Source: Lama glama | Lineage: Eukaryota | NCBI GenBank assembly: GCA_028534125.1 | Contig: CM052828.1 | Coordinates: forward strand, 52,204,001 to 52,268,000 | Direction of reading: 5' to 3' | DNA length: 64,000 nt | Part shown: positions 12,963 through 42,496 of the stretch, piece by piece | How the letters are laid out: each line of letters starts with the position of its first letter | Numbering within the stretch: the first letter of the stretch is position 1 | Program-made: the position numbers and the translations under genes | Notes under the pieces: generated by a model | Databases searched by the model: none | Told to the model about the DNA's origin: nothing | The model's input: only the letters and a program-made list of their open reading frames with translations

Positions 12963-15680
12963 GTGAGTTCTGTTGGCTTCCTTCAGAAAGCATGTGGGAA
13001 ATAACATAGTGATCTGCTTGAAGGGGGAAGAAACGACACCCACCCAGTAACAATGCCTTTGTGTTATGTTGCTGTTAGCATGAATGCTGATGGGTAGGAA
13101 ACAAAACTTGATTTCACATTCTCACCCTGACAAAGGTTGACCCGGGAATCCTTTGTCCTGGTGTTTGTCTGCTCTTTCAAGGACGAGACGCAATTGTTGA
13201 TAAGTCAGTTGACTCAAAGGAGAAGCTTGGCTGGACAGTGGCCAAGGAGACTAAACTTGTTCTGCCCTATTCTTGGATTTAACGTTCGTCATTGAATACA
13301 CATTTGCCTTCACACATAAAACTGTCAAGATTTCGCTACTTGGATTCTGCTCTAGAGTTCAGTAAACCAAGACACATGAAGCTGGACTGAGTCTAAGTGA
13401 AGCTTAAAACTAAATGTTTTAACTTTCTTCATCTAGACAAAGGATAAATTAGATTGTGCTCCTTCGAAGGCTTATGATGATTCACCTGGGCGATCTTTTT
13501 CCTCTTGATCAAGGTGGAACTTACTTGAAATGGAATAAACACAGGTTTCAGGAAGGAAATTATGTATATAGACCAAGGTCGACATATATAAGCACTAGGA
13601 CAAAAAAAATTGTGCTGTTACCTAATTTTAAAGTTTCTGTTGTATACAAAACAGTCCCATATAATCAGCCACATCCTGTTCAGATCATTGCCCAGTTAGC
13701 AAGATTTCCGAAAGTTGGTAGAAAGTGTCACTCCCCGTAATCAACCAGTTACCTTAGTCTCAGACGGCCAGGTGTTTTTAGAGACCATGCTTATCTTGTT
13801 ATTTCTTGTACATGGGCATTGTTCAATATCTACCAGACTTAGCAGATAGATGTTTTCTTATTAATTTGACAAAATGATGTGAGAAAAAGACAAAAAGTAT
13901 GTAACTTTTATTAAACTTGAGCTATGTTCCAGTTCTCTGTATATTATCTCGTCTAATTCTCATAACAACCCCGTGAGATCATTTTACAAATGAGGACGCT
14001 TTGTCACAGAAAGTTCTGTCACTTTTCCCTTTCCCGTGTTTGGCCTTGCCTCTTCATGCCGTGATGGGGGAGAGCGGAGGGCTTTGAATCAGGCCGACCT
14101 GGTCTCTTTTAGCTCACCCTGGCAAATTACTCACCCTTCAACCGCTATTTCTTTTGCAACATGGGATTAATAGACTCTTCCTCATAAGGCTGTGAATATT
14201 AAGTGATAGCATAAACATTCGGTATATATTAAGTGTTCTATAAATATACTCTCCTTTCTTTATCCTCACTTAACCGTGCCCCTCCCTTTCCAAACAATGG
14301 GAAATTTTTAAATAAAGCTTCCTTATTAGAATAGCAACTTCAGAAAATGTCTCTGGCCCTGGGCTTTGGGTGAGCAGAAGAGAAATCTGCTAGACTCAAC
14401 AATTCCTGATGCCATTTGGTCTTATACCTCCTTCCTCCCACGTTCCTTCCTTTTTAAAGTCTGTTAATAGAGTGACTCTTACTCACACATATGGGAAGTG
14501 GAGGTGCACTGGCATCTGGAAAACTGTGTGCTTGGTCTGATAGATCCTTCATCCCCAGATGCCAACAAGGGGCTCAGAATCCCGAGAGTCTTGCATTCTC
14601 CAGCGGAAATCGACGGGCTCGGAAGGTCTGCTTTTTGCATACTATTTGATGCCGTTGTGTGACACAGTATTCCTATAATCTTATCCTTACAAAGCCCCAT
14701 TTCTGTATTTGTAAGCATCCCAGAAATTCTGTCATGGGAGGAGAAATTTCAGAGTCCTCTGTGAATAGCATGTGCATTTAAGTTATTGATAATTATTTAC
14801 AATATCATTGAGGTCTGAGGGGTCAGCTTGTCCACCTTCTGCAGAAGCACTATTAACGCTGATGGAAATTTTTCTCTAATGAGCAGGATTTTCATCTCAC
14901 CTGTTTCTATATATACAATCTGAATTTTCTTTTTAATTTTTCTCCCTTTCATTTGAATTCACAGAGTCATCTTTCAGATAGCCTTTATTTTTTTTCATCT
15001 GCTCCTCTGTGGGTGGGCTTAGATATCCCCTGTATATATTTCAGACTTTTAATTTTCTCTAATTTATTATGAATCGACCAAGTGGGACAAGCTGATGAAG
15101 AGAAGACTCAGACACTAGACAGGGGACCACTCATGTCACAGGGAGGCATGAGGGGGGCCACACACCTGCAGGTCATATGTGTCTCCACCCATTATACCTG
15201 GCAGAACCAGTTTGTCCAAGCTTGTCCTACCAAGATTTCATTTGGTAAAATGACAGGATTGGGGATTGTTGTTTTTCCTGTTTTTTTTTTGCTGAGAGTG
15301 GACTGCTAAGGAATTTATTATGTACAGCAGCTAATATGTAGTATCTAATAAATTAAATAATATATAGTAGGTCATATATTGCACATTGATCAGTTCTTAA
15401 ACTCTCCAGGCACATAAAAGTGCCTGTTTCCCATATTTCTGAGAAGAGAGCACATGGGAGAAAGTGGATTTCATAGTCATGTGTTGCCCTTGCATTTTAG
15501 GAGTGGAAAGCAAGTGTATTGGCCCCGATGCCAAAGGGAAAACTGGAATGCTTGACTCTTTGATGTCGAATTATGGAGAAGACTGTGTTATAAAATTCAT
15601 ATGTGTTAAGAAACCCAAGATTAAAGCTCATTAAGAGTTTTAAGTTGTTAGGTGAATTCCACCTCCCCCCCCCCAATTTG

Positions 15681-16332
15681 CAGTCTGTTTTCATGACTGC
15701 AGATTTCATGTTTGCAATTTCACCAACTCTCTAAAATTTATTTGTAACCCCAGAATCAGCACTTTCAGTGCTTTCATGGTGCCTTGTAAACATGCACAAG
15801 ATGGTGAAAAATTTAAGTTGCCCTGACACACGTCTCCCCAGCTGAGGTCAAACGAGGTGACCCTCTGCGTTCCTGTTTTCAGCTATCAGATTATAAACAA
15901 GTGTCCTTTTTGTGATCTGTTTAGTGCCATGCTTTTTACATCTCTCTGCTTTTTGTTGGTGATTTCCCTGTTTAAAATGGCCCCCAAATGTCATTGCTGG
16001 AGTGCTGTGTAGTGTCCCTAAAAGCAGGGAGGTTTTGATGTGCTTTAGGGAGAAAACAAACAGCAGGGTAGGATAAGCTTCATTCAGGTGTGAGATATAT
16101 AGTGCGGTAGACACACTGGCCGTAGGTTCCATGTTAATGAATCACCGAGGTACAAAGGGTAGGATGTCCTTCTAGAGAAACACACATAAAACAAGGTCAA
16201 TTGATAAAATGTTTCAAGTCTCACAGGAACCTAACCCTGTATTCCCACTGGGAACAGTGGTTTAGTGTGCACGGATTCGCTATTTGCGAGGACTTTATAT
16301 AGCACCATGACCATGAATAAGGAGATGAACTG
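15681..16332. mobile_element. TcMar-Tigger DNA transposon remnant (MER82-like)
   Basis: cagtc...aactg ends; ctaaaatttatttgtaacccc, tttaaaatggccccc and aggaacctaaccctgtatt motifs. Confidence 0.7.
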
Positions 16333-17589
16333 TGCTTTCTTAAGGCCAGATAGAAGGATGTACAGAAAGGACAGTGCCACCATCATCAAGGCGACCACTG
16401 AGGGTGGCAGTGTGGCAAGGAGGTCCTCCCACTTCTGTGCTGTTGTTTGCGATGGAGGGCGCCAGCTTTACTTAGGGCGAAACACTTTCAGGAAGGGCAA
16501 TGAGGAAGTAATGTTACTGACTGGCCATAGCAGCGGGGGGGCTGGTAAGTGAGTGATGCTTCCAGTGGCCCCCTGCAGGTGCCAGGTGAGTTGGCGCTGT
16601 TTGGTGCAAAGTAAATATTCTCATTGGATGTGATTTATAGCCACATAGAGGCCACATCCTGCGTGATGATAGGGGGAGTGCATTGCCCAAAATGTGACAA
16701 GCTGCTTCAGGTGACAAAGCGAACAGTAGGTTTCGTAGCAGTGGTTTACTCGCTTTTACTCTAAACAGCTGGGCTCCGGCCACTTAGGCTACTTTTATTA
16801 AGCTTGTTGCACAGACTACGTGAGAAGGTACACGGTCCCAGCTGTAATAAACTGCTATTGCCTGAGCTTGGAGCTAGTGTCGTTAAGGGACAGTTGTTTT
16901 AAAGCTCTATCCTTTAAATTTCCAGATGGCAGCAATTTGGGGACTATGTTGAGGTTACCCAAGAAAAATACACCTCCTATTTCTTGAAGATGAAAAATGT
17001 ATAAGAATTTTCAATCCGACTGATCATTTCCGACAACAGAATTACATGAAATTTAACAAACTTTCATTTATTTTTGCTGAATTTGATTAGATACCTTTAC
17101 CCTTATTTATAACCATCTTTTCTCTACATGATAAAGCATTTGGGGTTTGCACTCACGATTGTCATATGTGCATTTCCAAAGTTGATTGTGTCAAGTCCTG
17201 AAATTCTGGGGCTTTTTTAGAAGTCAGAAGGCCTTCACATACCAAGAATTTATTGCCTGAAATAGAAGTGACCCCTAGTTGGCTGGGGAGGAAGGAAAGA
17301 AACCAGGAACGTGGATGGCGGAAGATGGATGATTCTGAAGTTTTCTTCCCAACTGGTAGAGATGAGACAAAGTGGAAACTGTCATCTTACATCACAGCAG
17401 CGTTCTTAAATGTGTCCCTGCATCCACATCCTCCATATCCAGCCCTTATGATACCTACCAGCTGGAATTGCCTTACGTTGTCGGCTGGTTTTTCCAGTTT
17501 ACTAGTTGAGCAACGGTCCACTGGGAATAGAACAGATTGTGAGGTATTAATCATATGTGGCTGGTTTTTCTTTTCCTCTTTCTTTGTAG

Positions 17590-17704
17590 CCGAGATTGGG
17601 GATTTTGATGAAGCATCGGACAGAGAGCATTTAGCAAAAAATAAGTACATACCTCAGCAAGATGCCCTAGAGGACAAAATTGTGGAATTTCACCATAACC
17701 ACAT
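17590..17704 (+). CDS. FARP1: FARP1 coding exon (~exon 7): SEIGDFDEASDREHLAKNKYIPQQDALEDKIVEFHHNHI
   Basis: ttgtag / gtaagt; 115 nt, phase 1->2. Confidence 0.97.
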
Positions 17705-18572
17705 GTAAGTCTCCTTCGTTGCTTCCAACTTCCTTTGAGCTGTTTCTCTCTGTCCTTTAATGTATGTGGGTGTGCACACACACACATACACACACACACA
17801 CAGTGACTACTGGGAAGAAATATGCAAAGAGTGAGGGAGTGGAGCACAGAGGCTCCCGTGAGTGTTGTTACTCATCCTGGGCTCTTGGAAATGCAGGTTA
17901 CCCACTCAAGACCAGACTCTCGGCTCCTTGCTTGCTTTCCTGGGAGACCAGAGTAACCTTGGAATTCTAGGACACCCCATGCTTTGGAGTGAAAGGAAGA
18001 GGATAAGACCAAGTCCTGGGAAATCAGAACGGGGACATGGAAGACTAGGGACAATTTAAGACTATTGTGGGGTGGGAGGGCAGAGAAGATTGTGAAATTG
18101 GAGAACCTTTGTACTGTCTCTTTTGTTTTTTTGTTTTGATCGATCAAATATTTTCAAAGCCTTTTGTTTTTGTTGTTGTTTTAAGGAAGGCACTTGAGTC
18201 TTGGTGATAGCATGAAAGTGTTGCCTTGAACTTTGCAAGTTTAGGGCTGTTATAAGTGACTGCAAACTTGTTTTCACACAATGGTGTTTAGCTTTTATAT
18301 GACCTTAAAGGAAATTCTTTGAGATTCTGAAAAGCTGGCCGAGTATGAGATAGACTTGGGGGGGTTTGTGTTACACGAGCAATAGAGCTTTTGTTCTAGC
18401 TGCTCGACTTTGGGTTATAATGAATGGGAGGTTGGGTATCATCTGATCAGGTGGCCCCATTGTTTGTGATGAAATGCCTTTTTATTTCCCAAGAGAAGGT
18501 GCTTAATCTCAAATTATTAGACACAGGGAATTCAAATCTCCTGGCCTTTCTCTTTAATTTTTGTGTTGTCAG

Positions 18573-18720
18573 TGGACAAACACCAGCAGAATCGGATTTC
18601 CAGCTCCTGGAGATTGCCCGTCGGCTGGAGATGTATGGGATCCGATTGTACCCGGCTAAGGACCGGGAAGGTACTAAGATCAACCTGGCTGTGGCGAACA
18701 CAGGAATTCTAGTGTTTCAG
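18573..18720 (+). CDS. FARP1: FARP1 coding exon (~exon 8): [49 protein letters not shown]
   Basis: tgtcag / gtaaga; 148 nt, phase 2->0; FERM signature LEMYG. Confidence 0.97.
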
Positions 18721-19189
18721 GTAAGAGCGTTTAGAGGCCTGCTTGGTTCCCTTGGCAATGGAGAGATAAGAGTTGGTCCCTAGACTCTGATTCCATGCTG
18801 GGTGGTCCCAGCCAAGACCTCTGATTTTAGTTGTTTTTTAGGTGAATAGGGGAAAACTGACCTTGTCTTGGGGTTTCCCGTTTCTTCCCTTGCTCTCAGC
18901 TTCCCGATTTGATTTCCTTTGCCCTGGGTCTGGTTGGGGAATCCACAGTTACAGATTTGTTGGCATTTATTGACTTTGTAGGACCACAGAGATCTGGATC
19001 TCTCTGTGAACCTTTGCTGGGAACATAGTGTAATGGAGTCAAGATTTCAGACCCCCAGATAAACACCGTTTTCACACTTAAATATGGTATTCATCTGGTC
19101 TTTTTTTTTTAAACCTAATTTGTGTTTTACCTAAGTCAGCTTATTTGTGGTTTCACATTTACCTAACTTAAAAGTGTAGCATGTTTGAA

Positions 19190-19620
19190 GCAACATGAAT
19201 GGACCTGGAAATTATCATATTGAGTGAAGTAACTCAGACAGAGAAAGAGGAACATCACATGATATCACTTATATGTGGAATCTTTAAAAAATGATACAAA
19301 TTCTATTTACAAACCAAAAACAGACTTACTAACATAGAAAACAAACTGTAGTTACCAAAGGGGAAAGAGCGTGGGGTCGGGGGTGGTAAATTAGGGGTTG
19401 GGGATTATCGGACACACATTACTATATATAAAATAGATAAACAACAAGGACCTACTGTATAGCACAGGGAATGATATTCAACTTCTTGTAATAACATATA
19501 ATGAAAAAGAATTGAAAAGAAAAATATATATATATGTGTGTGTGTGTATGTATAACTGAATCACCTTGCTGTACACCTGAAACTAACATTGCAAATCAAC
19601 TGCACTTTAATAAAAAAAAT
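19190..19620 (+). mobile_element. L1 LINE 3' end
   Basis: atggacctggaaattatcatattgagtgaagtaa...gacctactgtatagcacaggga...aataaaaaaaa. Confidence 0.85.
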
Positions 19621-19809
19621 TTTTAAAGTATAGTATGCACTTGGAAGATTCATAGAAACTACAGCCACGTCCTGCTGTAATTTTGCAGCAGAACACCTAC
19701 AGCTTATGGATCCTTACCTGTGTTTTGTATAAGGACATGACATTGTACTCGGAAATGCGTGCCCGCTTGGCCACACTGCTGCTGTACTGTTTCATTGATT
19801 AGTGCATCT

Positions 19810-20130
19810 CTTTTTCGTAACAACTCCGTTGAAGAATTGACACACAATAAAATGTACACATTTAAAGTGTAACCATTCTTAAACATAAGTTCTCAAATAT
19901 ATATATCCTGTGAAAACATCAATGAAATCAAGACTGTGAACGTATTCACCACCCCAAAAGTTTCCTCAAGACTTTGGTTTTTTAAATTTTTTTTAATTGA
20001 GATATGGTTGATTTATAATATTATATTAGTTTCAGGTGCACAACATAGTGATTAAAGATTTTACAGATGATACGTCACTTAAAGTCGTAAAATACTAGCT
20101 ATGTTCCCTGTGCTGAACAACATATCCCTC
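19810..20130 (-). mobile_element. Short L1 3' fragments
   Basis: tttttaattgagatatggttgatttataatattatattagtttcaggtg is a reversed L1 3' terminus. Confidence 0.6.
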
Positions 20131-21584
20131 AAGGCTTTTGTTTTAAACAAAAGTGGATAAATCCGTGCTTCGGTTTCAAAGGGGCAGGAAGAAAGCTTCT
20201 GCCTTCTTCATGAAAGACGGTCAGCTTTCACCCAGCTCTAAAGGTGTATGACCTGAAACTTTTTTTTTGAGCTCTGCCGGGTTGGGTTGCATTTCCTGCT
20301 TTGTATTTTACTGAAATAACCCCAGGGATTCTCTGTCCCTGTATCAGTTATTTATGATGGATGTTAATTGCCTCAGATTCATGGCCCAAGAGCAGTTGAG
20401 GCTGAGTTTCCTGTGGGACACTAGGGAGTGACATTTTGAGAGCAGTGTGGTATTTGAAGAGCTGACTGTCCCTAACAGTTAACGACCTACAGAAATAATC
20501 CTGGAGTCCCTGATGAGCAAAAGGACAATAAAACAATGTAGTTTTCAGTCCTGCTGTTCCATTTCAAAATTAAAACCCTTAAAACATTTCTAAAAATCAT
20601 GGAGATAAGAAGTGCCTGACAGCTGAATTAATTTGCTTTGATTGTGTTGGATAGTCTGAATGTTGAGAATTGCTCAGGAGTGCAGTCACGTACAAAGCCT
20701 GTATCTGGGAATTCATCTTCCGGTCGGTGCCTAATTGCTCCATCCTAACCAATTTAAATAAGTGGTCCTGGTGTTCAAGTGGGCTCGAGAGGCATTCTCA
20801 TTTCGGCTGAGATGACAGGGCAGATGGGGGCTGGTGTCTGGCAGCTCTCCGCTGGTATTCCACCACGACCTGGCGAGCAAAGGTGCCAGTGTGTGTCCCT
20901 CCTGGAGACAACTCTGGCCAGGAAGACACCTGGGGGTGGGGCCTCCCCTCCCCAGACCTTTCCGAGCTGGAAGCCCCCTGGGCATGGGAGCCAGACCAGT
21001 GTGGACAAAGCGGGTGGTGGCTCCCTGCTGTGTTGCCGCTGTGGATATTAAGCACGGCTGCTGGTTCCGGCCCACACCCAGGAATCTCGTTCTGCCTCAG
21101 TAACTGTGTGATTTGGGACACATTAAAATCCAGCCACGCTGCAGTTTCCACATCTGTAGAAGGGAGATAATAAATCCAGCTGGCTGGGTTTTGTGTCAGG
21201 CTTGACGAGATAAGGTCTGTAATGGACTCGGGATGGCACCCGGCACCCCGTTGGTGATGGTCGCTAATAATTGTTTGTGGTGGTTGCCATGATTTTTATT
21301 TGTATTTATCTTTCTCTTTAGCAAGCCCCTTGGCCAGCCTCTTCTCTCCCTGGCAGCAGACTCAGTCTGAACGCCGAATCATATAATTAGTGAGAAGTAC
21401 TGATCCAGGCAGGGAACGGGTGTCATCCCAGTGCTGCGGGTCCTGGGATTTCTCCAGCAAGAGGCATCCTTCCGAGCAGTCTCACATCAGTCCTTTCAGC
21501 TCCCTGGGAACAAAGCCAGCCAGTCCCCAGTCATGTTGCTTCTTACGTGTTTCCAGGCTCACTGGCTGATACTTTCCTTCTCAG

Positions 21585-21680
21585 GGCTTCACTAAGATCA
21601 ATGCCTTCAACTGGGCAAAGGTGCGGAAGCTGAGCTTCAAGAGGAAGCGCTTTCTCATCAAGCTCCGCCCGGATGTGAAT
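21585..21680 (+). CDS. FARP1: FARP1 coding exon (~exon 9): [32 protein letters not shown]
   Basis: tctcag / gtgagt; 96 nt, phase 0->0; FERM F3 lobe. Confidence 0.97.
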
Positions 21681-23046
21681 GTGAGTGCCTCAGGGAAGGA
21701 GGGGGAGGCCTCCCACTGGAGCGCGTCCTGGAGCCCGACTTGTGGCCAGCAGCCATGTCTGCGTGTCCCCATGGTGTATCCTGATGCTCGGTCACTCCCG
21801 AGCTGTCACCATCAGTAGGCAGAGGGTGAAGAAGCAGCAGCACAGATGTGTGCCTGGGAGGGGCCCCGCCCTGGGCACCTACAGGCTGTCCCCTCCTCCA
21901 GCCTCGGCCACCTTGAGACCACGAGCAGCATTCTGCCGTGTTCCAGGCCTGTCCCTTCCCGCACAGCAGCAGTCCCTGCTCCTGTCCCCAACCCCTGACA
22001 GGGCATTCTCACAAGCTAACCAGGCCCCGATGTAACACACATGGCACCTGGTCAGAAGGAAGTGAGCCGCATCTTCCTCGGCCATAAATGGCGATGGAGG
22101 AGACAGGTGGCGTATTGCTAGTGTCCCCAACCAGACCTGGAACGCTTTTCCCCAAGGAAAAAAGAATGATGACAAATGGCAGTTCAGGCTTAGAGTAGCT
22201 GGGCCGCATGAAGGGTGAAATAGGCTTCTCTGGCCTGAGGTGGGAAGCAGACCCCCATGGTAAGTGGTTTTCTAAGTGAAAAGTGTTGTGAGTCCCAAAG
22301 GCTGTGTTCAAGTGACGAACTGCACCACAGCGTGTCAGTAAGTGGGGGCGGCCCTGCCCGGACCTGCGAGATTCCCCGCGAGGAGCTGGAGCGGCCGGGA
22401 GTGTTCAGGCCTGTGGTCACTTCTGTTGATGTAATATGACCACTTCAGTTGGGAGCCTGCAGTCTGGGAGTAGAAAATGGCCATATCCCCTTTCCCAAAT
22501 CAAAGGACATGAATTTTTCAGCCTTGAGTGATACTTTTGTGCTCCAGAAGAAGTGCTCATTTCCTGTCTGGGCCCTGGGGCCACCTGGAGGCTGGAGCCG
22601 TATGCTTTTCAATGGAGAAAAGGCTTAAGAGCAATATTCAAAGTTGGCCTGAGCCATGAGGGAGGAAACAGGGAGAACTGGGTTTCAGTTACTTTAAGGA
22701 GGCCAAAAAGGAATTTCAGAACATTTTTTTTAAGAAGGAGATATAAGCCAAGTAAACAGAGTTTGTTTATGAATTCTGTCAAAGGAGATGCTGTGACTTC
22801 TGCTGAGTCCACTTTGTGTTTGTTCCAATAAGGAATTAAGTGGGGAGGAAAATGGTTGAACAATGAGTAGACTTTGTCATTAGGGGCAACCGTGTTTTAC
22901 TAAACAAGTGAATTCATGGTCAGGCAATAATAAAATACACAGTTGCAATTTTACTGGACACATTTATTTTCTGCCCCCTTTTCCGTTTTTCAGCTGCATG
23001 CCTATGGGTAATGGAAAAAAACCAAAGGGCTATTTTCTCTTTCTAG

Positions 23047-23210
23047 AGCTCATACCAGGATACCTTGGAATTCCTAATGGCCAGTCGGGATTTCTGCAAG
23101 TCCTTCTGGAAAATCTGTGTTGAACATCATGCCTTTTTTAGACTTTTTGAAGAGCCCAAACCAAAGCCAAAGCCTGTTCTCTTTAGCCGGGGGTCATCGT
23201 TTCGGTTCAG
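23047..23210 (+). CDS. FARP1: FARP1 coding exon (~exon 10): [55 protein letters not shown]
   Basis: ttctag / gtgagg; 164 nt, phase 0->2; FERM end (WKxCVEHHxFFRL) and start of FA. Confidence 0.97.
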
Positions 23211-23898
23211 GTGAGGCGTCCCCTTCACATCTCCCCGGTTGCCAGGCGATCGTTTTCCCCGCGACTTGCCTCGGGGAAGAGGTGGCTTCCAAGAGGTTTG
23301 GTTGGTGGGGTGCGTGCTCCGTCGTCCCAGCAGGCTCCTGGCAGACCCTCGGTGTGTTCCGTTTGAACGTTGGCTACCCAGCCTCAGTCAACTCCAAAGG
23401 GGCCAATTCAGAAAGGATTTTCTTTCTCTGTAGAAGATAAAGCACCTTGTTAACACTTGGTGTACCTTTCCCGAATGCTGCATAGACTTGCCCTTCATTA
23501 GTTCGATTTCTCACCTGTTCTTTCAGCAGATCTTTGAGTATCTGTTGTCAAATTCTGTCGAGGCTTTGGGGATATGCAGTGAACACAACTGTCCCCACCT
23601 TCAGGAAGTAGACAGACTCTTAGGATGGTTGCCTCACAACCAAACACAGGATTACTAAGTGGTTTAGTTAGAAACTTTTTCTGTTATTGATAAGGGAAAT
23701 ACCAAGGGACAGAATAAACACAAAAGCATGCTTTTCCTTGGCGCTGCTTCTATTCCTGGCTGGCTGAGAAAACCCACTCACCTCCCAGTTCTGGAGGGAG
23801 GGGAGGTGAAGATGGCAGAGTGCTGGGGTGGGGGAAGCGGTGTTAAATGAGAATGCCTTAGTTGTCTCCCCTGCTTCTTCTCGTGCTCTTCCTTTTAG

Positions 23899-23967
23899 TG
23901 GTCGGACTCAGAAGCAGGTTCTCGACTACGTTAAAGAAGGAGGACATAAGAAAGTGCAGTTTGAAAG
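23899..23967 (+). CDS. FARP1: FARP1 coding exon (~exon 11): GRTQKQVLDYVKEGGHKKVQFER
   Basis: ttttag / gtaaga; 69 nt, phase 2->2; FA domain (SGRTQ...FER). Confidence 0.97.
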
Positions 23968-24261
23968 GTAAGAGAAGGTTCGATGCTTCTTCCAATTTGA
24001 GAGGAGTCATCCTCTCAAGGGAGCAGTGCCCTGCTGCTCGGCACCGCTTCCCCCAGGCTCGGGGAGTTAGAGCCTCGGCCAGTTCAGTGTCAGGAACCTC
24101 TGAGGGCCTGGGGACACTCACTGGAGGATCAGATGAGACTCGAAGAATGGACTGAGAGTACCAAGCGAGGGAGAAGAGGAAACCAGCAGAGGGCAGGGCT
24201 AGAAGAGGAACAGGAGGTTACAGAGGGGATAAAGCACTGTCCAAACTTGCTCATCAGTGAG

Positions 24262-25879: not shown

Positions 25880-25955
25880 GAAACACAGCAAGATTCATTC
25901 CATCAGAAGCCTTGCTACGCAGCCTACAGAGCCGAATTCAGAAGTGCCAAAACAA
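25880..25955 (+). CDS. FARP1: FARP1 coding exon (~exon 12): KHSKIHSIRSLATQPTEPNSEVPKQ
   Basis: tcccag / gtcagt; 76 nt, phase 2->0. Confidence 0.93.
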
Positions 25956-27049: not shown

Positions 27050-27299
27050 TCTCAGCAGAGTGCCAGCCTTACCCTCGGAGAAGGTGCTGAATCCCCAGGC
27101 AGCCAGAGCTGCCAGCCAGGAAAGGAACTGAATGTTTCCGCCCAGGAGAGCGGGCCGCCACGCAGCCCCGCTGCACAGAAGAGCCCGGCAGGGAGCACGC
27201 CGGCCGACGGAGCCGTCAGGGCGACGGTGGAGGAAGAGGAGGAGGTCGTTAAGGACAGGACCCAGCAGAGTAGACCTCAGCCCCCGCAGCCAAGCACAG
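27050..27299 (+). CDS. FARP1: FARP1 coding exon (~exon 13), linker: SQQSASLTLGEGAESPG...EEEEEVVKDRTQQSRPQPPQPST(G)
   Basis: ccccag acceptor; weak donor CAG|gtccag; 250 nt, phase 0->1, matching the phase-1 acceptor at 41020. Confidence 0.92.
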
Positions 27300-28276
27300 G
27301 TCCAGCATCCAGGGCTGCTAGAGGCAGCAGCGCTTCCATTCCTTTCATTGACTGCAGTGACGTAGACAGTGAATCCGACCTTCTCAGGGAACACGCATCC
27401 CAGTCACGGTCCCAAACAAATGACAACTATGAGGGTGATTTGACCAGTGGTGTTTATCTGCTCTCCCGGGAGGAGAGGCGAATAGAAGCTAGGCATTCTA
27501 GGGCTTCCCCGCACTCTGTGAAGTCCTCCCGGCCTCCTTCCAGAGAATTCCTTGACGATGATTCGGCAGACATATCCTTTGATGTGAGCGGGAGCCCCAG
27601 ACTCCCAAGACATAGCTCTCTGATAGATGAGATGTTCGGGGGCTCAGGCAGCCACAGTCCCTTGGCCACCCCCTTATCTCCCAGCAGCAGAAGCTCAAGT
27701 CCAAATATGCCTTGGGGCCGGACCAGGTCTCAAGGCTATGTTTCCGAAAACGGACATGACCCTAGAGAGAGAAGTGTGGGAGAAGGTACTCTCCTAAGCC
27801 CGGGTCCTCATTACGAAAACTGTTCTCCCGTCTCACAAAGGCCATATTTAAAGAGTCTTCCCGGTGGATACAATAAGTCAGAGACAGATCCACTCATTCT
27901 TAGCCGGGGAGCATCAACCCCAGAGGCAGCAGGTAGGCTTGACGGCCCCGGAGAGGGAGGAGTGGTCGGCCCGGCTGGCTTGGAAGGCAGGACGCTGGCT
28001 AATGGGACCCCTCTCGTGGGTCCAGCCTCCAAGACCCCCACTGCGCAGGCAGCCCATACCAGTCGCCTGGGAGACCAGCTGGCCCCCCTGCAGGTGACCG
28101 AGGGCTCCACCAGCAGTGGGACTGAATCCAGCGATTCAGACTCTGAGATGGTGAGCCCTCTGAACCAGCCCCTCGTGTTTGGTAATCCAGCCGTGCTGGG
28201 TTCCCCCTGCGTGGAGAGGAATAAGAAGTCCCTGAGTGGCCTGCGTGTGAAGGAGGAGAGGGAGGAGAATGAGTGA
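27300..28276 (+). CDS. FARP1: Putative in-frame extension of exon 13 (alternative terminal exon), 325-aa Ser/Pro/acidic tail giving a DH-PH-less FARP1 isoform
   Basis: ORF 27227..28276 (349 aa) is the longest in the window, shares the frame of exon 13, is GC-rich and repeat-free, and ends at TGA 28274-28276. Confidence 0.65.
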
Positions 28277-29329
28277 GGAGACTCGAAGGCATGTCTTCAA
28301 GTGTCGGGAGCCTGGGTTCCTGAGTCCCGGCTTTCGGTGGAGATGATCTGTGCTAGCGACTTGTGCATTTTTAATTGACATCTGTTAGAGGAAGTTTGGG
28401 GCAGGCACACGTTGGATAGGGCATGCCTGACTTCTCAGAGAAACCAAACTTCACAAAGCCTGACAAATTACCAAGAGCTTGTTTATCTTTCTGGTGGAAG
28501 GCTAGAAAGAAATACTTTATTACGAATCTGATCAGTGTGTAGCGTGTCGTATTTATGTGGAAATTTTCTTGTATGTTCAGTTCTGTAGGCAGATCACCCT
28601 CCCATTTGGTTGAGTCTGGGGACTGAAATAGCACTGAGACCCCAGGAAAAGTGTTGGTTTTACTTTTAACCCCTTCTTGAAAAGGGGGGCTGCTTTTCTG
28701 TGCCTCGTAAAGTGAGAAACTGACAAAATTCAAGGCCAAATGTAAGTTGATTGCTAGTTGAGGTGAAGTGTTTGTGAAATCTTAGTTAAGACTAGTGAAC
28801 ATTTTAATCAGAAGCACGTGGAATTACTTCTTTGCAGACTTTGTATGAAATGATATAAAAGTCAGAATCTTCAGGAGCTGTAAGTGACATGAGATTGCTG
28901 GTTCGGTTTGGGTTTGGTTTGGGTTTGCTTTGGTGGGTCAAATTTGTTGGTTATGTTTGAAGAAGCTGTAACTGGTGAGCAGAACCTCTTGGTGAAGCAC
29001 AGACATGCTGTCAGGCGATGGTGCAGGAGGAAGTAGGTACTGTTGTCACCGGGAGGTTGGCAGACTGAATGCTGCCTTTGAATAGTGCACAGCACAGAGA
29101 AGGGCCGAGTCCCAGTCTCATTGCCTTGGGTTGAGTTTTACGCACATTCTTAATGTTCACTCTCTTGGGAACAGCAGCTTCTCTCAGAAGCTGACTTACG
29201 GCTGCTTCTCTGTGCAGGAAGAAAGAAAGTGAAAGTAGCAAGAAGTCTGGCTTCTTTTTAAATCTTGACCACCTACACCAGTGCCTTTCACCCAGCACTC
29301 CTGCATTTCAGATGAAGAGCCTGGTTTGG

Positions 29330-29485
29330 ACTTGCTTTGTGTCTCAGCCTTAGCTGCACCTTGGAATCACCTAGGAATTTAAAAATTGGCATTGCCCGAA
29401 CCCAGACCCTAGAAATTTCGTTCTCATTGAGCTGGGGTGCCTCTTGGGCTCCCCAGATGGCTCTGCTAGGCAGCCAGGGTCACTC
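29330..29485. mobile_element. MER5-like hAT-Charlie fragment
   Basis: ctcagccttagctgcaccttggaatcacctagga...cccagaccctaga. Confidence 0.5.
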
Positions 29486-32400
29486 CTCAGCCAAACATGA
29501 TTGCCTTCTAGACTCTGGTGGAGTGTAAGGAAAGCGCTGGCTGAAATTCTGGCTTGCTTGCTGAGTAGGAAGAGGGTCACAAATGAAGTGCTTTTCTTCA
29601 TGCCTGTTATTTGGTACTTTTTAGTCTTCGGTACTTTTTTAAAAAAAATAAATTGTAGAGTAAAAGTTTTAGATCCTAAGTAACCACAAAATCCTCGAGC
29701 AGAGTTGTAACAACGATACATCTGATGTCTGCCATGCCAGTGGCCTTAGTAAAACCTCATCATGTGGCTTTGTCATGCGGAGGGGCTGATCATGGGTAGG
29801 AAACGGAGTAGAATTTGGCAGCAGTATTTCACGAACAGAAATATTGACTGACCTTGTGGTTCACAAGTGATTATCTGTCCACATGAATGTCCAGAGGTTG
29901 GTTTTAAAGATTCTGAAAACTTTAATCCATTTTTATACACACTTCTGCTCTGTCTTCCTAATCATTTGATTCAGTGCATGATTGATGAATCAAATTGATT
30001 ATCGGATAGCTTGAAAGATGTTCATTGAAGTAGTCTATTCATGTCTTGCTTTAGAATTACATATTTAACAGTCACAGAATTTGAAAGCCAGAAGGGACCT
30101 TAGAGATCACCTAGGTTAAACCTCATTTTACAGATGAGAAACTTTCTTCCAGTGAAGAAGTCACAGAAGTCATACAGCTGTTGCATGACAGAGCTAGAGC
30201 CAGAAAGCTGGTCTCCGGACTTCAGCATTTTACTCTATGTGACGTCTGGATGCAATAGGTCCTTTTAGATTTAATACTTTATTTTTTGAGACTCTTGTAT
30301 GCATTAATAATTAAAATCATGTGGCAACTAGGAATCCTGTAGACTTGACTTAGGCAATGACAGTCCTACTAGGCAGGAAGACCGGCTGCTTTTTTATATT
30401 GCGGGGTTTTGCATTATAACACATTTTTGCATATTCTGTTTTGAACTTAGAGAAAGATGTCAATTTGCTGTAGAAAAATTTACTTAAATGGGAGTGTAGC
30501 GCAGTGACACTTGGAATCCTGTGGTTTATTTGTGAAGGTGGTCTGTTGAAATGAGTTTTCTTTTTACTTCTAATCATACAGCAGTCTGATAATGAAATAC
30601 GAATGAGCAAAAGGGTTGAACTTACCCAAAACAAAATGTGAATCATCGCATGTAAACCCCCAAAGCAAAACACGCTCCAGTAATTATTTTGTTTGGCTTT
30701 TTCCCTAAAGAAGTGATTTTTATCTGAAGTGTTTTAAAAGCAGCTGATCAACAGTGGTGTCCCCTGTCCTGCACTGACAAGATTTTCCACTGTCAGGGTC
30801 ACTGGTAGAGTTTTTCTCAGGTTGGTTTCATACCAGCCACGTAACTGAATTTCTGCTTCTCAGCCAGCGTTTATGAAAGTGGCAATCCTGGTGTGGTTAA
30901 TGGTGCTTAAAAGAAAGGAGGGGTGTGGTTTGTTCAAAAGCCACTTACCCTGAAGTGCTGAGAATACTCACTAATTGCTTCAGGGAGCACTTGCCGAGCG
31001 CTGGTGGGACAGTCAGCCTCCCGCCAGCATTCTTTGGTCCTGGCGGTAGAGCCAGTTGACCGAGGTGGAGAGGTCAGGGAAAGCCACGAGTGTCCACCAT
31101 CCCACCTTCTGTGCCCTCTGCTTGTGAGACTCCGGTCCCGAGGTCCTTAACTGGTCGCTGGAATCTCACTGTGTGGCGTAACAAGGGCAGGCAGATCAGA
31201 GAGGGGGTCAAGTATGAGGAATAAGCAGTGGAGATGAGACACCTGTGAATTCTTGCAGATTTCTGAAGGGTTTCCTAAGACCTTCCGCCAGTTTTTCTAA
31301 GACAAGAGCTAGTGTAGGGTCTCCTGCATCAACAGGGAAGCCAAGGCTTCAGATCACGGCTGCTCTCTGAAACAGTGTCTTAGGGGCTTGGATAGAAGAC
31401 CAGCTCTATAGAGAAATAAATCTTCATGCCACTCAGGGCTACTCCAGGGCCTCCTTGCACTAATATCTTTTGTTAGATAGTGTTTCAAAATATGTAAATT
31501 ATAGAACCTTTTGGGTTGATTTTTATTGCTGCTTGTTCAAGGCAATATAAAAATGCAAGAAATTCTCTTAGCGTGAAGAAATGCGTTTAATGAGTTCCAG
31601 AACTTAAAACGGATTGCTCCAGCTCCTTCAGCAGTCATCTGTGTGACCTTGACAACCTTTTATTAGACAGGCATTTAATTAAAGGAAGTCTGTGGGCCAG
31701 ATTCTTCCCCACACATGTGGTTCCTAGTTGGAAATTCCTCACAGATTTATTTTCTATGCTGCTGTGGCCTGCACTTAAAATGTGAATTCTTCCAGTTTTA
31801 TTCTCGAGAATTTCTTTGAAGATTCGAACCAAGCAATGCTGCTTTAAGAAAAAAAAAAAAAAAGCTAGACCCTGCAAAACCAAAATGCAGCGTGAGCCTC
31901 TGGAAATTTCTACCAAGTATATGAAATCGGCCTGTCCTCAGTTGAATAGGAGCTCCATTTGCATCTTAGCTCTGGAATCATTTTGATTGTGCTGTAAAGC
32001 AGTTCCTGAAAAAAAAAAAAAAGGAAACACTGCAAATACTAAGCTGTCGTTTTAAGCTTTGTTAAAACTGTTGTGAATGTGCACAGCTCCCTTTTTTCCT
32101 AACTGTAATCAGTGTTCACATTCAAATGCTTTTAATCAACGTTTTCCACTTAAAATGCTCTTCCATATTTCAACACAGTATGGGTTTGGTGCAATTGGAA
32201 TCATTAGTGAGTAACTGAGTTCCAGGTAGGACCAACCTTCAATTAGGAAATTTGGGGGCCCCTTCATCATTAGATTTATTTTGAGTTTATCTGCTTCTGT
32301 CTCGATCACTCTTCTTTACCAGGCCCTTGTTACTAGCCAGAACGTCAGAGCTTTCCAAGTTGTATCCCCAAGGAAGGCTCTTTTTCCCTGGATTTTCTCC

Positions 32401-32488
32401 TTTGTAGTCTGTGAATTTCCCTCCTCTGATAATCAGGAGCTTAGTTCTCTAAGGTTGGCCTTCCTCTAGTTTCCTGGAGATGCGTCTA

Positions 32489-32790
32489 CAGTTGATTCTT
32501 TTTTTTTTTTTTTTTAATTTTTCTTTAACGGAGGTCCTAGGCCTTGAACCCAGGACCTCATGCATGCTGAGCATGGGCTCTACCACTGAGCTTTATCCTC
32601 CCGCCTTTCAGCTGACTCTTGAACAACACAGGTTTGAACAGTGCAGGTCCACTTACACTCAGATTTTTTTCAGTAGTAAATACTGCGCAGTGCAAGGTTA
32701 GTTGAATCTGCAGATGCGGAAGTGCAGTTACACATGGAGGATGGACTATAAACTTCACGGGGACTTTCCTCTGCTCAGAGGGTCAGCGCT
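32489..32790. mobile_element. Tigger2/MER8-like MITE interrupted by a SINE
   Basis: TA-cagttg start; cttgaacaacacaggtttgaacagtgcaggtccactta terminal motif. Confidence 0.7.
32501..32608 (-). mobile_element. vic-1-type SINE
   Basis: PolyT + gaacccaggacctcatgcatgctgagcatgggctctaccactgagct. Confidence 0.85.
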
Positions 32791-35781
32791 GTATTTTATT
32801 GCTGCCAATTTTACAAATCAAACTGCAGAAGAGTCCTTCCATGCGGTCTCTGCAATAGATTAAGTTTCTCTGAACCTGAAAGAGGTGAACATTTCAAAAC
32901 AGCCCGTCGCTGGTAGCTCTTGGATGAGTTTTACATTCAGCCGTGGTAGCCAAGTTCATAAGAACGTGTGGGAGGATTGGTCCTAGTGAGTGAACGTATA
33001 TAAGAAGGAAGTGATTAAAGAACTTGACTCTGGCGACATTTAAAGAATTTCCTGGCCCTGCTTCTTCCTTGTTAGTTTAATTCCATCTGTTTCTGTTTAG
33101 CTGAACAAAATGTAATACAGGGAAATGGGGTCTCTAGTGCACACCGTGCATACCTCTAACACCAGTTGCTGGTATTTAACTGAAGCCATGACTTTTAGAT
33201 CAAAATAAGGCAACCCCTTAATGTAGCAGCTCCCTTTTTATTAAAAATAACAATAATAATGAAAAGCAAAAAATATACATATCCATGATGACTTGACCTA
33301 GCGTTGTCTGCTCAAAGATCAAAAGTGGCCTGGTTGCCACCTGTTTGGATACATACTTGAAAAGGGTTACATCGTGTTTCCTGGGGGTAACCTAGGGATT
33401 TTGAATATTTCCCCCCATGAACAAAAGTTGCAAATGCTGATTTGTGCGTCATGTATATGTTTGGGAGGAGGTGGATAGAGTCTTGTTTTTGAAAAAGGGT
33501 CTTCCTTCATAAAATTAACAACACATTAGTCCCAAAAAACAGATGAAATCTACTTCCATCCTGGGGAACTTTTTTTTTTTCTTTTCTAGCAAAAGCAGTT
33601 AAACACCCTGGTAGAAGCTAGGGTTGAATTAGAAAATTCTCCTTTTCCTGAAAGCTTTAGAAGTTGAGTAGACTGTTTGTTCAGGACGGTTTCAGTGTGG
33701 ATGGCCTAAGTGATACAGATGTCACAGCTTAGCCTTGGAAACGGCCTCGGGCCGTAGTCCTGGGTTAGCACTTCTGGTAGGAGGCAGCTCATTTGCATCT
33801 TCATGTAGGTTCTAGATCAGGTTGTTCTGATAGGTCTTGGGCTGGTTTTTATATTTGAAAGTAGGGAGAATTCAATTAACTGTTGACATGGGATAGCTGA
33901 TTTTGTATAGTTGAGAGCCCGGGTGAAAAATCAGCTGCCAGGCAAATGCTGTTAATGCATCATGGAAATGGTATGGAAGAGTCCTGAGCTTGCTGCTGGG
34001 GCCAGAGGCAATGATTTTGGAATATTGAAGAGCAGTTAGAAATCACTGCAAAATGCAACACAAACCAAGGGTACTAAGGAGGATAGGAGGGAGTGAGGAC
34101 TGTGTGCACGTGTGTGTGTGTGTGTGTGTAGAAAGCATCGAATAGTGATTAACTCTACTTTTGAGTAAGAGGTAGCGGTGGCAATGGTACTGGGAGTTTG
34201 GAGGCAGTGATTCTGCTTTATTCTAAATTGGGGTTGTTAACTGACTCTCAAATAGGAAACAGTGGAAGGGTCATTTTGGAGCCTGGTGGTGGTGCAGTGA
34301 CGGGCCTGTCATTATTCACAGATGACCTTTCTGGCTCATGAAACTGGGCTGACGATTGCTTTTTCCTGGGCCTCAAAGTTCCTTTGTGAGAAATGAAGCA
34401 TTTGTCACTCTGCCTGCGGTGATTTATGGAAAGACCAAAGACAGGTTTTCCTTAGTCGAGAACACACACCCGCTGCTCTCTGCACACGCGCCTGAGTGGC
34501 CGGTGGATTCAATCCCTCACCTTCTTTCTGCCTGGAAAGTTGCCCTGAAAACCTGACTAACCCACTCGCACAAGCTTGGCCTGTATTATTAATCCAGTTC
34601 CTTTCTGTTCTCTCTGTGTGTATATTTAATATGTTATTAAAAATTTTCTAATATGTGGAATTAATTTTAAAATAGAAAAGGCTGGGGACTTCATTCTCAT
34701 TTTTGTCATTTGTTGGATAAATTCAAAAGGACATTTTTCTGTTGTGCCATGGTATGCCCTGTTGTGTCAGCATGTACCTATCCAAGAGAAAAAGCTTTTT
34801 TTCAACATTCTGTCTTTATCCTCAAAGCATGGTGTACCTTCTGTTCCCTGCATTGTTGGAGCACTGTCTGATGTCTTTTTTTTTTTTTTAACACAACTGA
34901 ATACCAGTTTGTACTTTGGAATACCTGTTTCCTCTAGAATACAGTGATCCTGGTCTGTAAACAGCAGGTTTTAACAGGCGGGCATCCTGGGCGGTCACAC
35001 TTGGTGACACCATATTTCTCTAAAGGTGGGGAAACAGAAGGTGAACAGAAGACTTCACTTTTCTGATCTCATCTTCTACAAGCCTGCTCTTTGCACTGTG
35101 TGCCTGGAGTGGGTGGTGTTTGGACGCGAGCAGGATCACTGTAGTCTGGGAGAGGGCTCATGGAAACAGAGAGTATCTGTGGTCAGGCTTACATAGGGGG
35201 AGCCCGGACGGCCAAGCAGAGGATTGGCTTCTTGTTTGGAATGGGAACATCTATTCAAATGGGACTAGAAAACTGGACGTCGTTTGTAAAAGGATTTAGC
35301 TGTGTCTTCACTTTGTTGGGGAGTGCGGGTAGGTGGAAATAGAAGACCTCATCTAGCATAGCCCCAGCTGGCTTCCTCACCGCCGATAAGCTGTTTTTCA
35401 GTTTGCAGTCTTCCCACGATGTAGGCTGTCACAGATACTGTCTGGTTTCATCTTCTCTCCACGGCCTAAGAGTGCAGTATCACAATAAAGCATGGATCTC
35501 TACCACCAGGAAGGTGGCCGGCTTCTCCGATAACAATGAGCTTGGTGATTCTTTTAAGCATGGAAGGCCAAACTCATGTAACAAGTGTATGCACGGTGTT
35601 AATATCTCTTGTTAATCTCAACTGAAGAGGCTTTTACTTGTCCTAACAGGTATCTTGCTGTAAAAACTGTCAATTGTAACTGTGCTTTCCCTCTGATGGC
35701 TGAAGCTTTATCCTGAGTACAAGATGGTATTTTTCATTGGTACGAAGCACCATGTTCCCCAATCCAAACAATGCCACTGCT

Positions 35782-35832
35782 GCCGCCGCCGCCGCCGCCA
35801 CCGCCACCGCCACCACCACCACCACCACCACC
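35782..35832. repeat. Compound (GCC)n/(ACC)n trinucleotide repeat
   Basis: gccgccgccgccgccgccaccgccaccgccaccaccacc... Confidence 0.95.
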
Positions 35833-36134
35833 TTCAAACAGAGAAGAATCCTTTATCTTTTCCCCATAAGCAAGAACAAGCTAGTGCATTCCCTGTCATT
35901 TTTCCATTAGCATTTCTCTTTATATTTTTCGGCAAGTCGCCTTGCTGTTGCTTTTCTGAATTGCTTGATGATGAGTGGTGACACTGATGTTTAGCAGCTT
36001 GTAAAACTCTTCCTAAAGGAACTTGGTCTAAGAAGTACATACCTTACCTGCAACAACCCAAGTTACCAAGAAGACCCCACTGCTATGATGGGTAATCGTA
36101 TAATCTGGTTTTTCTTGTGGAAACTTGTCATTTC

Positions 36135-36140
36135 AATAAA
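36135..36140 (+). terminator. Candidate polyadenylation signal AATAAA
   Basis: Context ttgtcatttcAATAAAacagtgacag; upstream TGTA elements (e.g. ~36000), U-rich and GU-rich sequence downstream. Confidence 0.4.
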
Positions 36141-37529
36141 ACAGTGACAGCTCTTTTCCCATATTCCACTGTGGTGGGACCCAGCTTAGTCATCAGACTA
36201 GAGTGAATCCTGCCTTTTCTGGAGATGACCCGTAGTTAATCTATACAACACTGACCTTTTTTTTTTTTTTCCATCCGATAACTGGCTTTCAAATGCAGAT
36301 GGTCTCCAGGGAGAGTTCACGGTTTTCTCTTTCAGAGGGGTATCGTGAACTTTAAAAAGAGCCTTTTAAAAATAAATGAGAACCCCCCTCTGTAATGTAT
36401 TTCCTCCGCGTGCCTTTGCAGCACCTTCTGGGTCCACAGAGATGCGATCTCCAATATTTTAGAACCAAGTAACAGGAGACAGGTCATCACAGATGAGTGG
36501 CATGTAGAAGTTTGCCACATATATAACTTCAGGGGGATACTGAGGAATCCACACAGATACTTTTTTAGTAACTGTACTTTCTAAAATTTTGAAAAGAGGA
36601 CTTGAGAAAGCAGTCAGCATCCTCATTTTCATCAGTATTCTTATTCTCAGATATTTTAATATTTAGCAGATCTCTGGGTTACTATTTTTTAAATTGCCCA
36701 ATTTTATAGTTCCCTCCTTAACAGGAAAAATAAAACTTATGGAATTAAAAATAGGACGTGCCAAAGAATGCAAAAAAAAAGCGGGGGGAGGCCCAGGTAA
36801 AAACATAGGGCAGGTGCAACGAAGTATTCAAAATGCCATTTTTATTACTTGAAAAATAGATAAAAATTCTCATCTCCCAGACTTGCGTGCGTCTGTTCTG
36901 CCTTTAATATTGTCAGAGGAGGTGGGTGGTTACTAGGCGCCCTGTGCCCAGTCCTAAAAGGGGAAGACATGCATGAGTTTGGCTGGTTGACTCTGTTCCT
37001 GCTGTGGATGTAGCTCTGGTGAAAAGCTGGTTAAGAGATGCTGACGTCTAGGTGAGGCTGCAAATCCAGCTTCCCCTGTGCAGCTGGGAGAGAAGAATTA
37101 TGAAGTTCTCTTACATTCTAAAGATAAAGCAGCTAAGCTAGTTTCTGGGCTGGGTGATAAATGGAAATCCATAAATATGGCAGTGCTAATTTCAAGTTAC
37201 ATAGTTGTTTGTGCCATGAGACTGTGTACACTTAAAGGGGTTTTTAAAAGCAATTACCATAAATGCCTCCCTCGAGAGTAGTATGTTTAGTCCGTGGGAG
37301 CGACATAAACTCAGGCCTCTTGATACAGATTGAGGGTGGGGAGGGGGACATGGAGGTTGGCTGGCGGAGGGGGGGGGGGAACTGTCATGACGTTATTTGG
37401 AAGAGGTGAGGAATTTGAGAGTTATTAATCAGAAATACAGCTGAATGCCTAAAAAATGCAGAGCATTTTCTGAAAAGGGGGAAAAAGTTTTTTAAGCCAG
37501 CATTTTGTTTTATTTAGGTTTTGTTTGTT

Positions 37530-41019: not shown

Positions 41020-41207
41020 GCTCCCTGACTGGTAGCCCTCACCTTTCAGAGCTGTCCATCAACTCGCAGGGAGGAGCCGCCCCTGCCAACGCCATCCTGT
41101 CCCCCAACCTGAGCCCCGACACCAAGCAGGCATCTCCCTTGGTCAGCCCACTGCTCAACGACCAGGCGGGCCCTCGGACGGACGACGAGGAGGACAGCCG
41201 GAGAAAG
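41020..41207 (+). CDS. FARP1: FARP1 coding exon (~exon 14): GSLTGSPHLSELSINSQGG...SPLLNDQAGPRTDDEEDSRRK
   Basis: aaacag / gtgtga; 188 nt, phase 1->0. Confidence 0.95.
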
Positions 41208-41239
41208 GTGTGAGGATGGGTGTGGGCTTATCTGCTCAT

Positions 41240-41705: not shown

Positions 41706-42406
41706 TATCAGGTGCTGGAAGTGTGTTCACAAGCACCTGCTCTCATCTCTACTTCGTGTGTATCCCCAGGGGTGGAATCTCATGGACTCTTGTGGGAAGA
41801 GAGCAAAATGGTTAACAATGAGGGATTTCCTCTTACTCTTTGGTCAAAAAGAAAGCGAAACTGATGGCTGGCCGGCTCTAGAGCGGAGCTGCCTGCCCAC
41901 CTAACCCATGGACTCCTGCTTCCACCACCCTGGTCCCTTGGGATGCACCACCCTCCATGCTCCCACGAAGAACGTAGCTTCCATTTCCTGAACACCAGCG
42001 TCATCCACGGCACCCAGGCCAAAGGCTGCTGTGGTTTCTGCTTCATTCCTTTCCTTGAAGGCTGCATCACTTTGATATTTTACTAAGTAGATTTTCAGAC
42101 GCCCATTTCTGAATGACTTAGTCCTGAGTGGTGGCTCGTACGCCCAGCCGGGACCTTTCACTGCGGGTGGTATTCACATGGAAGGAAACATTCCTAGACT
42201 ATTTTCTCATCTTGGAAATCCATTCTTGTACCCTCATTCCTCTCACACAAAAAGGAGAATAAATAGGAGTTTATTTAGCCTTGATAGTGGTCAACGAAAG
42301 ATCAGAAGTTAGCAATGTAGCACTTTAATGAGGACTTTCTTATAATCAGGACATCCTTAGAGACTGAGACTCAAAAATATCTTTTTTCTTTTTATGGATT
42401 TCGCAG

Positions 42407-42496
42407 AGATTCCCAACGGACAAAGCATACTTCATCGCCAAGGAAGTCTCCACCACCGAGAGAACGTATCTGAAGGACCTTGAAGTCATCACTTCG
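42407..42496 (+). CDS. FARP1: FARP1 coding exon (~exon 15), start of DH domain: RFPTDKAYFIAKEVSTTERTYLKDLEVITS
   Basis: tcgcag / gtatgt; 90 nt, phase 0->0; DH CR1 motif ExxxTExxYLKDL. Confidence 0.97.

Follow-up and report, generated by a model that had tools for sequence, protein, structure and literature searches.

FARP1 probably encodes, beside its long GEF isoform, a short form that arises by reading through the exon-13 donor into intron 13 and carries a tail homologous to that of FRMD7, with both isoforms already present in a common ancestor and with the tail eroded in eutherians. This account was developed from a window, by which the whole analysed stretch of 64,000 nucleotides from Lama glama (contig CM052828.1, positions 52,204,001 to 52,268,000) is meant, and all features given below lie on its + strand. 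A sequence-only reading of the same DNA had proposed an FRMD7-like short product inside FARP1, and the proposal is supported by a coding extension conserved in jawed vertebrates, by tail homology established through orthologues, and by an intron of the same position and phase in both genes.

The window represents a eutherian FARP1 locus, which is a paralogue of FRMD7 and not FRMD7 itself. Named FARP1 proteins, aligned by tblastn, place the FERM, FERM_C and FA exons at 12857-23968. A small exon 12 follows the FA domain (25880-25955) and ends in phase 0 after Lys-Gln, with its donor at 25955/25956, and exon 13, in the form that the long GEF isoform employs, occupies 27050-27299, with a phase-0 acceptor at 27049/27050 and a phase-1 end, again located by tblastn with FARP1 proteins. 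The same type of search places exon 14, the continuation of the long isoform, at 41020-41210 and further DH exons at 42404-42493, 43520-43651 and 61920-62009. The DH exons at 41020-62009 identify the window as FARP1 rather than FRMD7; together with the FERM-FA exons, in which 11 of the 20 FRMD7 marker residues are found by hand count, they set it apart from the FRMD7 orthologues. A run of N at 52450-52578 lies inside a FARP1 intron and is either an assembly gap or a masked stretch.

Exon 13 is part of a single open frame of 408 codons (27050-28276, translated on the + strand), which crosses the donor at 27299/27300 and reaches its stop in intron 13. This donor (27297-27305), read from the sequence as CAG/GTCCAG, is a weak 5′ splice site whose fit to the consensus is limited to the GT and the exonic CAG, and its weakness is compatible with a regulated choice between splicing and a read-through that ends in intronic polyadenylation. 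The in-frame extension (27299-28273) comprises 325 codons and would form the C-terminal half of a FERM-FA-only FARP1 isoform without DH-PH-PH, and its TGA stop (28274-28276) has a position common to most of the eutherian ORFs seen. A 3′ UTR of the short isoform is presumed at 28277-31700 from poly(A) hexamers only, the first of which lie at 29647, 30310, 31415 and 31678; in the stretch 3′ of the stop up to 36800 (28277-36800), AATAAA or ATTAAA hexamers continue at 33014, 33240, 34636, 35484, 36135 and 36371. Five transcriptomic runs from two studies contain 46% of the sampled words of 27300-28700, which may derive from pre-mRNA.

Protein searches show that the extension is widespread. With the window ORF as query, 62 proteins were matched, among which mammalian ORFs are 63-83% identical and birds 54-55% identical over the full length, and which include named FARP1 proteins of 550-695 aa consisting of FERM parts plus the extension. 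The extension, for which conservation in mammals is also put at 70-80%, is present likewise in amphibians, teleosts, sturgeon, and elephant shark, and forms composed of FERM-FA plus the extension are annotated in Callorhinchus (751 aa), Xenopus (811 aa), Sarcophilus (785 aa), Saimiri (787 aa), Pavo (695 aa), and many fish. Between the window and a bird FARP1 extension (L001, described below), the differences at the first, second, and third codon positions are 0.28, 0.27, and 0.51, compared with 0.24, 0.30, and 0.47 in the constitutive exon 13, and in the first half of the extension they are 0.20 and 0.19 at positions one and two and 0.50 at position three. On this pattern, and on a frame that has stayed open, with conserved sequence, in species from elephant shark to mammals, the extension is judged to be real and old coding sequence. 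No Pfam family was matched by the 408-aa frame, the bird extension, or the FRMD7 terminal exon, and a FARP2 counterpart of the extension was absent from the matches of the HMMER search (1.84 billion representatives) and of the word-index searches. The Logan proteins P0057, P0058, and P0068, which are possibly of human origin, and primate-like fragments such as P0076 were excluded from all alignments, profiles, and comparisons.

Several gene models among the matches deserve separate mention. In the teleost FARP1 models P0168 and P0169 (1021-1028 aa, with DH-PH), about 30 residues of the extension, with the Ser/Thr run and the acidic cluster, are found as a cassette within the protein, linked to the following exon. 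The cluster may also be spliced into the GEF isoform in some fish. In the models P0065, P0078, P0175, P0183, P0193, and P0200, the end of the extension runs directly into exon-14 sequence and DH-PH with the stop skipped, and these models are probably prediction artefacts that inflate 'FARP1' to 1169-1329 aa. The teleost 'FARP1-like' proteins of the P0069 group were considered as fish FRMD7 and rejected, being FARP1 paralogues for which some models carry DH-PH.

A comparison with FRMD7 required a terminal exon of that gene, and the protein collections did not supply one. The HMMER search of the window ORF against 1.84 billion representatives gave 27 matches (10 looked up by name, the others identified by sequence), all of FARP1 type and every named one checked being FARP1 or FARP1-like, with FRMD7 absent at E≤0.001. 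Word-index searches likewise gave FARP1-type proteins only among the matches listed, and with the bird tail as query no FRMD7 appeared at E≤10, probably because about 26 bits do not suffice for E=10 against a database of 5.8 billion. The ESM Atlas gave nothing usable for the bird tail and only sub-threshold, unrelated matches for the bird FRMD7 exon described next. Metagenome contigs, 241 million records in all, were scanned with a degenerate DNA pattern that encodes the conserved core of the FARP1 tail (S-x-G-S-L-Q-L and then acidic positions); the pattern has an information content of about 39 bits, and a few chance matches were estimated for a collection of that size. Three loci only were returned. 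The first, L001, carries the FARP1 extension of a bird and shares 92% identity with a song-sparrow protein, while L002 and L003 are near-identical contigs with the same 357-codon ORF of another gene, L003 coming from the same metagenome as L001.

The identity of this other gene can be read from its surroundings. The L003 ORF is preceded on its own strand by exons that all have AG/GT borders, namely FERM_C exons (E 8e-10 and 9e-10), an FA exon (2.5e-5), and one of 25 codons. Their identity to FARP1 proteins is 64-76%, compared with 93% for bird FARP1, and they are distinct from the FARP1 and FARP2 chains of the PDB; within 11 kb downstream of the ORF, no DH/PH match was found. L003 residues were numbered exon by exon from Cys271, with no joined model, and the residue-position pairs printed in papers served as the human reference; on this basis, L003 is in register with human FRMD7 at 19 of the 20 residues of a published variant table (PMC12811896), with only His333 replaced. 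The leucines of the nuclear export signal (NES), Leu354 and Leu356 (PMC3633374), are matched as well, and in the tail a uniform shift of two residues brings Tyr645, Tyr666, Arg678, and Thr697 into agreement, Lys668 being Arg. The C-terminal end of human FRMD7 that the sequence-only reading had given agrees both with the published Asp638, Gln639, Tyr645, Glu654, Tyr666, Lys668, Arg678, and Thr697 (PMC12811896) and with the bird exon. The FERM_C and FA exons upstream and the 19 of 20 residues in register identify L003, by sequence comparison, as the terminal exon of bird FRMD7, with a length of 346 codons. FARP1 and FARP2 are stated in the literature to be the closest homologues of FRMD7.

The exon that precedes the terminal exon is shared by the two genes. 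It has equal length in FARP1 (25880-25955) and in bird FRMD7 (L003 12517-12591), and in both genes a phase-0 boundary follows Lys-Gln, at residue 350 in FRMD7 numbering, the boundary sites being the donor at 25955/25956 and the acceptor at 27049/27050 in the window, and a donor after 12517 and an acceptor before 12327 in L003. The comparison of intron positions and phases that had been recommended as a check on the FRMD7 resemblance therefore came out as an identical boundary. Equal length, phase, and Lys-Gln end of the preceding exon indicate that the FRMD7 terminal exon sits where 'FARP1 exon 13 plus read-through' sits, and the former would be the paralogous counterpart of the latter. The CRM1-type export signal of FRMD7 (residues 344-356, with Leu354 and Leu356) extends across the boundary with the terminal exon, and the bird has retained it (L003 12298-12327); FARP1 (window 27050-27076) has Ser at both NES leucine positions and leucines three residues further on.

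The homology of the tails is most evident outside placentals. Non-placental FARP1 tails are highly constant and consist of a Ser/Thr run, an acidic serine cluster, PL-x-[FY]-GNP, SP-x-PRNK, a GSLQLDEE core with acidic residues, and a VFSC end. L003 terminates in blocks that are collinear with those of non-eutherian FARP1, namely the acidic serine cluster, the aromatic-Gly element, SP-x-x-R, and the GSLQLDEE core. An HMM built from 43 FARP1 tails scores the L003 ORF at 26.3 bits, with model positions 276-328 matched to residues 290-338 as a single collinear segment, although this match is partly built in, since FRMD7 is represented by one species only (two near-identical contigs) that was found through the scanned motif itself. 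The score was reached by none of 2000 shuffles, whether global or in 15-residue windows that preserve local composition. When the scanned motif was held fixed and the rest was shuffled, the flanks added about 18 bits (0/2000); when the motif was masked by X, the remaining similarity was weak (37/2000 shuffles). HMMs built without sauropsids and without any amniote still gave 23.8 and 24.8 bits against L003 (0/1000 each), and the tails of bird FARP1 and bird FRMD7 reach a Smith-Waterman score of 94, against 25±4.6 for shuffled sequences (0/5000), with a BLASTP E of 1e-4. Over the initial 285 residues of the FRMD7 exon, no similarity to the FARP1 extension was detectable in the HMM test, and by these comparisons homology is limited to about 50 residues and the exon position.

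The window tail itself is less telling. Its reading at 28121-28273, followed by the stop at 28274-28276, is exactly the one claimed earlier, and the last 60 aa aligned with the last 80 aa of bird FRMD7 give a Smith-Waterman score of 59, against 24.9±4.4 shuffled (1/5000). Without the ESSDSDS run, the score is 29 against 18.9±3.8 (117/5000, p≈0.02), and composition-adjusted BLASTP of the window extension against the FRMD7 exon returns no tail alignment. What survives in the window tail in the alignment, A1, is the serine cluster, Gly, SP, Arg, Ser, Leu, and Glu pairs. The shared pattern described in the sequence-only reading was thus correctly aligned, but in the window it is not significant by itself once ESSDSDS is removed. 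The same reading had named similarity confined to the SDSE run, and non-significant after composition correction or shuffling, as the outcome that would speak against it; on that measure the window tail is borderline and the orthologous tails are clear. Taken alone, the window tail is weak, borderline evidence, since the core motif is eroded in eutherians and about 17 residues at the end have disappeared, and the likeness to FRMD7 becomes unambiguous only through the non-eutherian FARP1 orthologues.

It may be asked whether this likeness is a product of chance, or of convergence between acidic, serine-rich, CK2-like low-complexity disordered tails without common descent. The dependence of the window match on the ESSDSDS run, the modest remainder, the blank composition-adjusted BLASTP, and a library-wide HMMER search free of any FRMD7 all point in that direction. 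They are outweighed by the four blocks of non-eutherian orthologues, which agree with FRMD7 in their order and in their distance from the C-terminus, by a scan of 241 million metagenome records that matched only FARP1 and a FERM-FA paralogue, and by the preceding exon, which does not differ between the two genes in length, phase, or Lys-Gln end, so that chance is extremely improbable. We regard the window tail as homologous by descent to the FRMD7 tail, a relationship traced through the orthologous tails.

How this homology arose is a separate matter. According to the favoured account, the common ancestor of FARP1 and FRMD7 would have possessed DH-PH exons and an alternative terminal exon, FRMD7 having retained the short form only and FARP1 both. 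An ancestor with a long GEF isoform and a short one had been postulated in the sequence-only reading; the ancestor itself is inferred, and the idea has a precedent in C. elegans frm-3 (PMC7260190). Alternatively, no such ancestor existed, and FRMD7 would be a later partial duplication of FARP1 that included the read-through exon, or the tail would have been moved by gene conversion or exon capture. With a single FRMD7 species the age of the tail is not fixed, and the protein searches found no FARP2 counterpart, both of which leave some room for a later origin. Recent gene conversion between the bird FARP1 and FRMD7 tails was rejected, however, as the third codon positions of identical residues agree in 13 of 26 cases; an old split is indicated by the remainder of the exon, which is too diverged to be recognised; and a partial duplication of FARP1 would itself need an alternative terminal exon already present in the donor gene. 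A later origin is accordingly rated very unlikely, little more credible than chance resemblance, and the two-isoform ancestor is preferred.

The eutherian copy of the tail in the window has been deprived of the best-conserved part of the motif, a loss which the sequence-only reading overlooked. The core is intact in the FARP1 extensions of marsupial, bird, reptile, amphibian, fish, and shark, and in bird FRMD7. In the window, the last 51 residues (28121-28273; from translation and alignment A1) represent the eutherian version of the tail common to the FARP1 extension and FRMD7. The acidic serine cluster, ESSDSDSE, is found at 28124-28147, in the form ESSDS-x-S-[DE] and about 45-50 residues from the end, and is invariant among the window, bird FARP1, and bird FRMD7 in A1 and in the HMM alignment. 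Collinear and 3′ of it follow the aromatic-Gly and SP-x-x-R elements, in which A1 has no variation at Gly, Ser, and Arg and almost none at Pro; the aromatic position is Phe in the window and Tyr in FRMD7, and this part alone is weak (p≈0.02 without the serine run). The intact core motif is absent from the window tail at 28229-28273, where an eroded counterpart is found with Ser, Leu, and Glu pairs as the only survivors and the stop directly after. In placentals, the stop lies about 17 codons earlier than in birds and fish, and the core is eroded in all eutherian ORFs seen. In the eutherian ORFs P0003, P0013, and P0030, the usual stop is read past or the tail end is frameshifted, which hints at relaxed constraint on the last approximately 20 residues in placentals. 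Just past the stop of the window, in the +1 frame (28275-28304), a short stretch ends in His-Val-Phe-Lys-Cys and resembles the ancestral Gly-x-His/Gln-Val-Phe-Ser-Cys end of reptile and bird FARP1 extensions, with only 4-5 residues matching; this could be a remnant of the terminus that placentals have lost, or a chance similarity.

These losses invite the view that the homology is real while the extension in this eutherian genome is a decaying relic, that is, part of a retained-intron or nonsense RNA rather than of a working protein. The eroded core, the missing last 17 or so residues in all eutherian ORFs seen, and the frameshifted or read-through ends in some species would fit a relic. A relic would hardly be expected, on the other hand, to preserve the open frame of 325 codons, as seen at 63-83% identity in over 30 separate eutherian clusters, or to show, in the first half of the extension, differences from the bird of 0.20 and 0.19 at codon positions one and two against 0.50 at position three; most eutherian ORFs, moreover, share the stop position and a eutherian-type end with paired Glu, and Ensembl/UniProt-style short FARP1 forms exist in the eutherians Saimiri, Galemys, and Rousettus. 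A relic is consequently unlikely, though it deserves more weight than the two alternatives above, and a working short isoform with an eroded tail end is the preferred interpretation for the window.

The mechanism proposed for its production is as follows. When the weak exon-13 donor is left unused, translation would continue in frame for 325 codons to the TGA at 28274-28276, with the short transcript presumably ending at an intron-13 poly(A) site. The ratio of the GEF isoform to the GEF-less FERM-FA protein would be set by how the weak donor competes with intronic polyadenylation. The short product would keep FERM, FA, and the linker, lack DH-PH-PH, and hence be without GEF activity, and by analogy with FRMD7 and C. 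elegans FRM-3 it may serve as a GEF-independent FERM-FA membrane scaffold.

A more far-reaching proposal, which goes beyond the account favoured here and is put forward as speculation that we think will probably not hold in full, is that the tail of about 50 residues constitutes an ancient functional module of a GEF-independent FARP/FRMD7 scaffold, predating the FARP1/FRMD7 split and perhaps as old as the FRM-3A-type isoform of invertebrates. Since the short form of FARP1 in eutherians lacks the core motif and the VFSC end, FRMD7 would then be the only intact carrier in placentals. If this were true, the position of FRMD7 as sole intact placental carrier would help to explain why the loss of FRMD7 is uncompensated, and the exact residues to be tested for functions in CASK binding, RhoGDI binding, or localisation would be at hand.

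The findings bear on FRMD7 and FARP1 in several respects. The C-terminal half of FRMD7, required for localisation and RhoGDI binding (PMC3163398, PMC3742540) and said in papers of 2011 and 2013 to resemble no other protein, would have a paralogous counterpart inside FARP1. The common part is narrowed to about 50 residues that appear to have been conserved since the common ancestor of shark and mammals, providing a defined motif for mutagenesis. An origin is offered for FRMD7 as the paralogue that retained the short form alone, and the short form of FARP1 becomes a testable candidate for partial compensation of FRMD7, its placental copy being eroded; the tissue-specific redundancy suggested in the sequence-only reading would be hypothetical. 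Many gene models in which the extension is fused to DH-PH are flagged as doubtful.

Among known systems, the canonical long isoform of FARP1 (a FERM-FA-DH-PH-PH Rho GEF) shares gene, promoter, and exons 1-13 with the short form, the protein being identical up to 27299; from there, the long isoform is spliced to exon 14 at 41020 and carries DH-PH-PH, whereas the short form would read on to 28276 and has no GEF module. FRMD7, the gene of X-linked infantile nystagmus, resembles the short form of FARP1 in its FERM-FA part, a small exon up to Lys-Gln 350, a long disordered terminal exon without a Pfam domain, and the lack of DH-PH, but it is a separate gene, its end is not VFSC, and its NES leucines 354 and 356 stand at positions where FARP1 has none. 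FRMD7 binds CASK (PMC3633374). In C. elegans, the FARP orthologue frm-3 gives rise from one gene to FRM-3A, with FERM-FA and a C-terminal part without recognisable domain, and FRM-3B, with DH-PH, and the FERM-FA part of FRM-3 suffices for a synaptic scaffold function with LIN-2/CASK (PMC7260190); as in FARP1, FERM-FA and DH-PH isoforms derive from one gene, a likeness of isoform architecture. The human FARP1 'short isoform' of PMC7507005 is different, being based on an alternative exon 3, and within the literature collection searched no paper was found that describes the FARP1 read-through isoform or links it, or the C-terminal domain of FRMD7, with FARP1. The annotated short FARP1 proteins of Callorhinchus, Xenopus, Sarcophilus, Saimiri, and Pavo represent the same read-through product in the form of automatic predictions.
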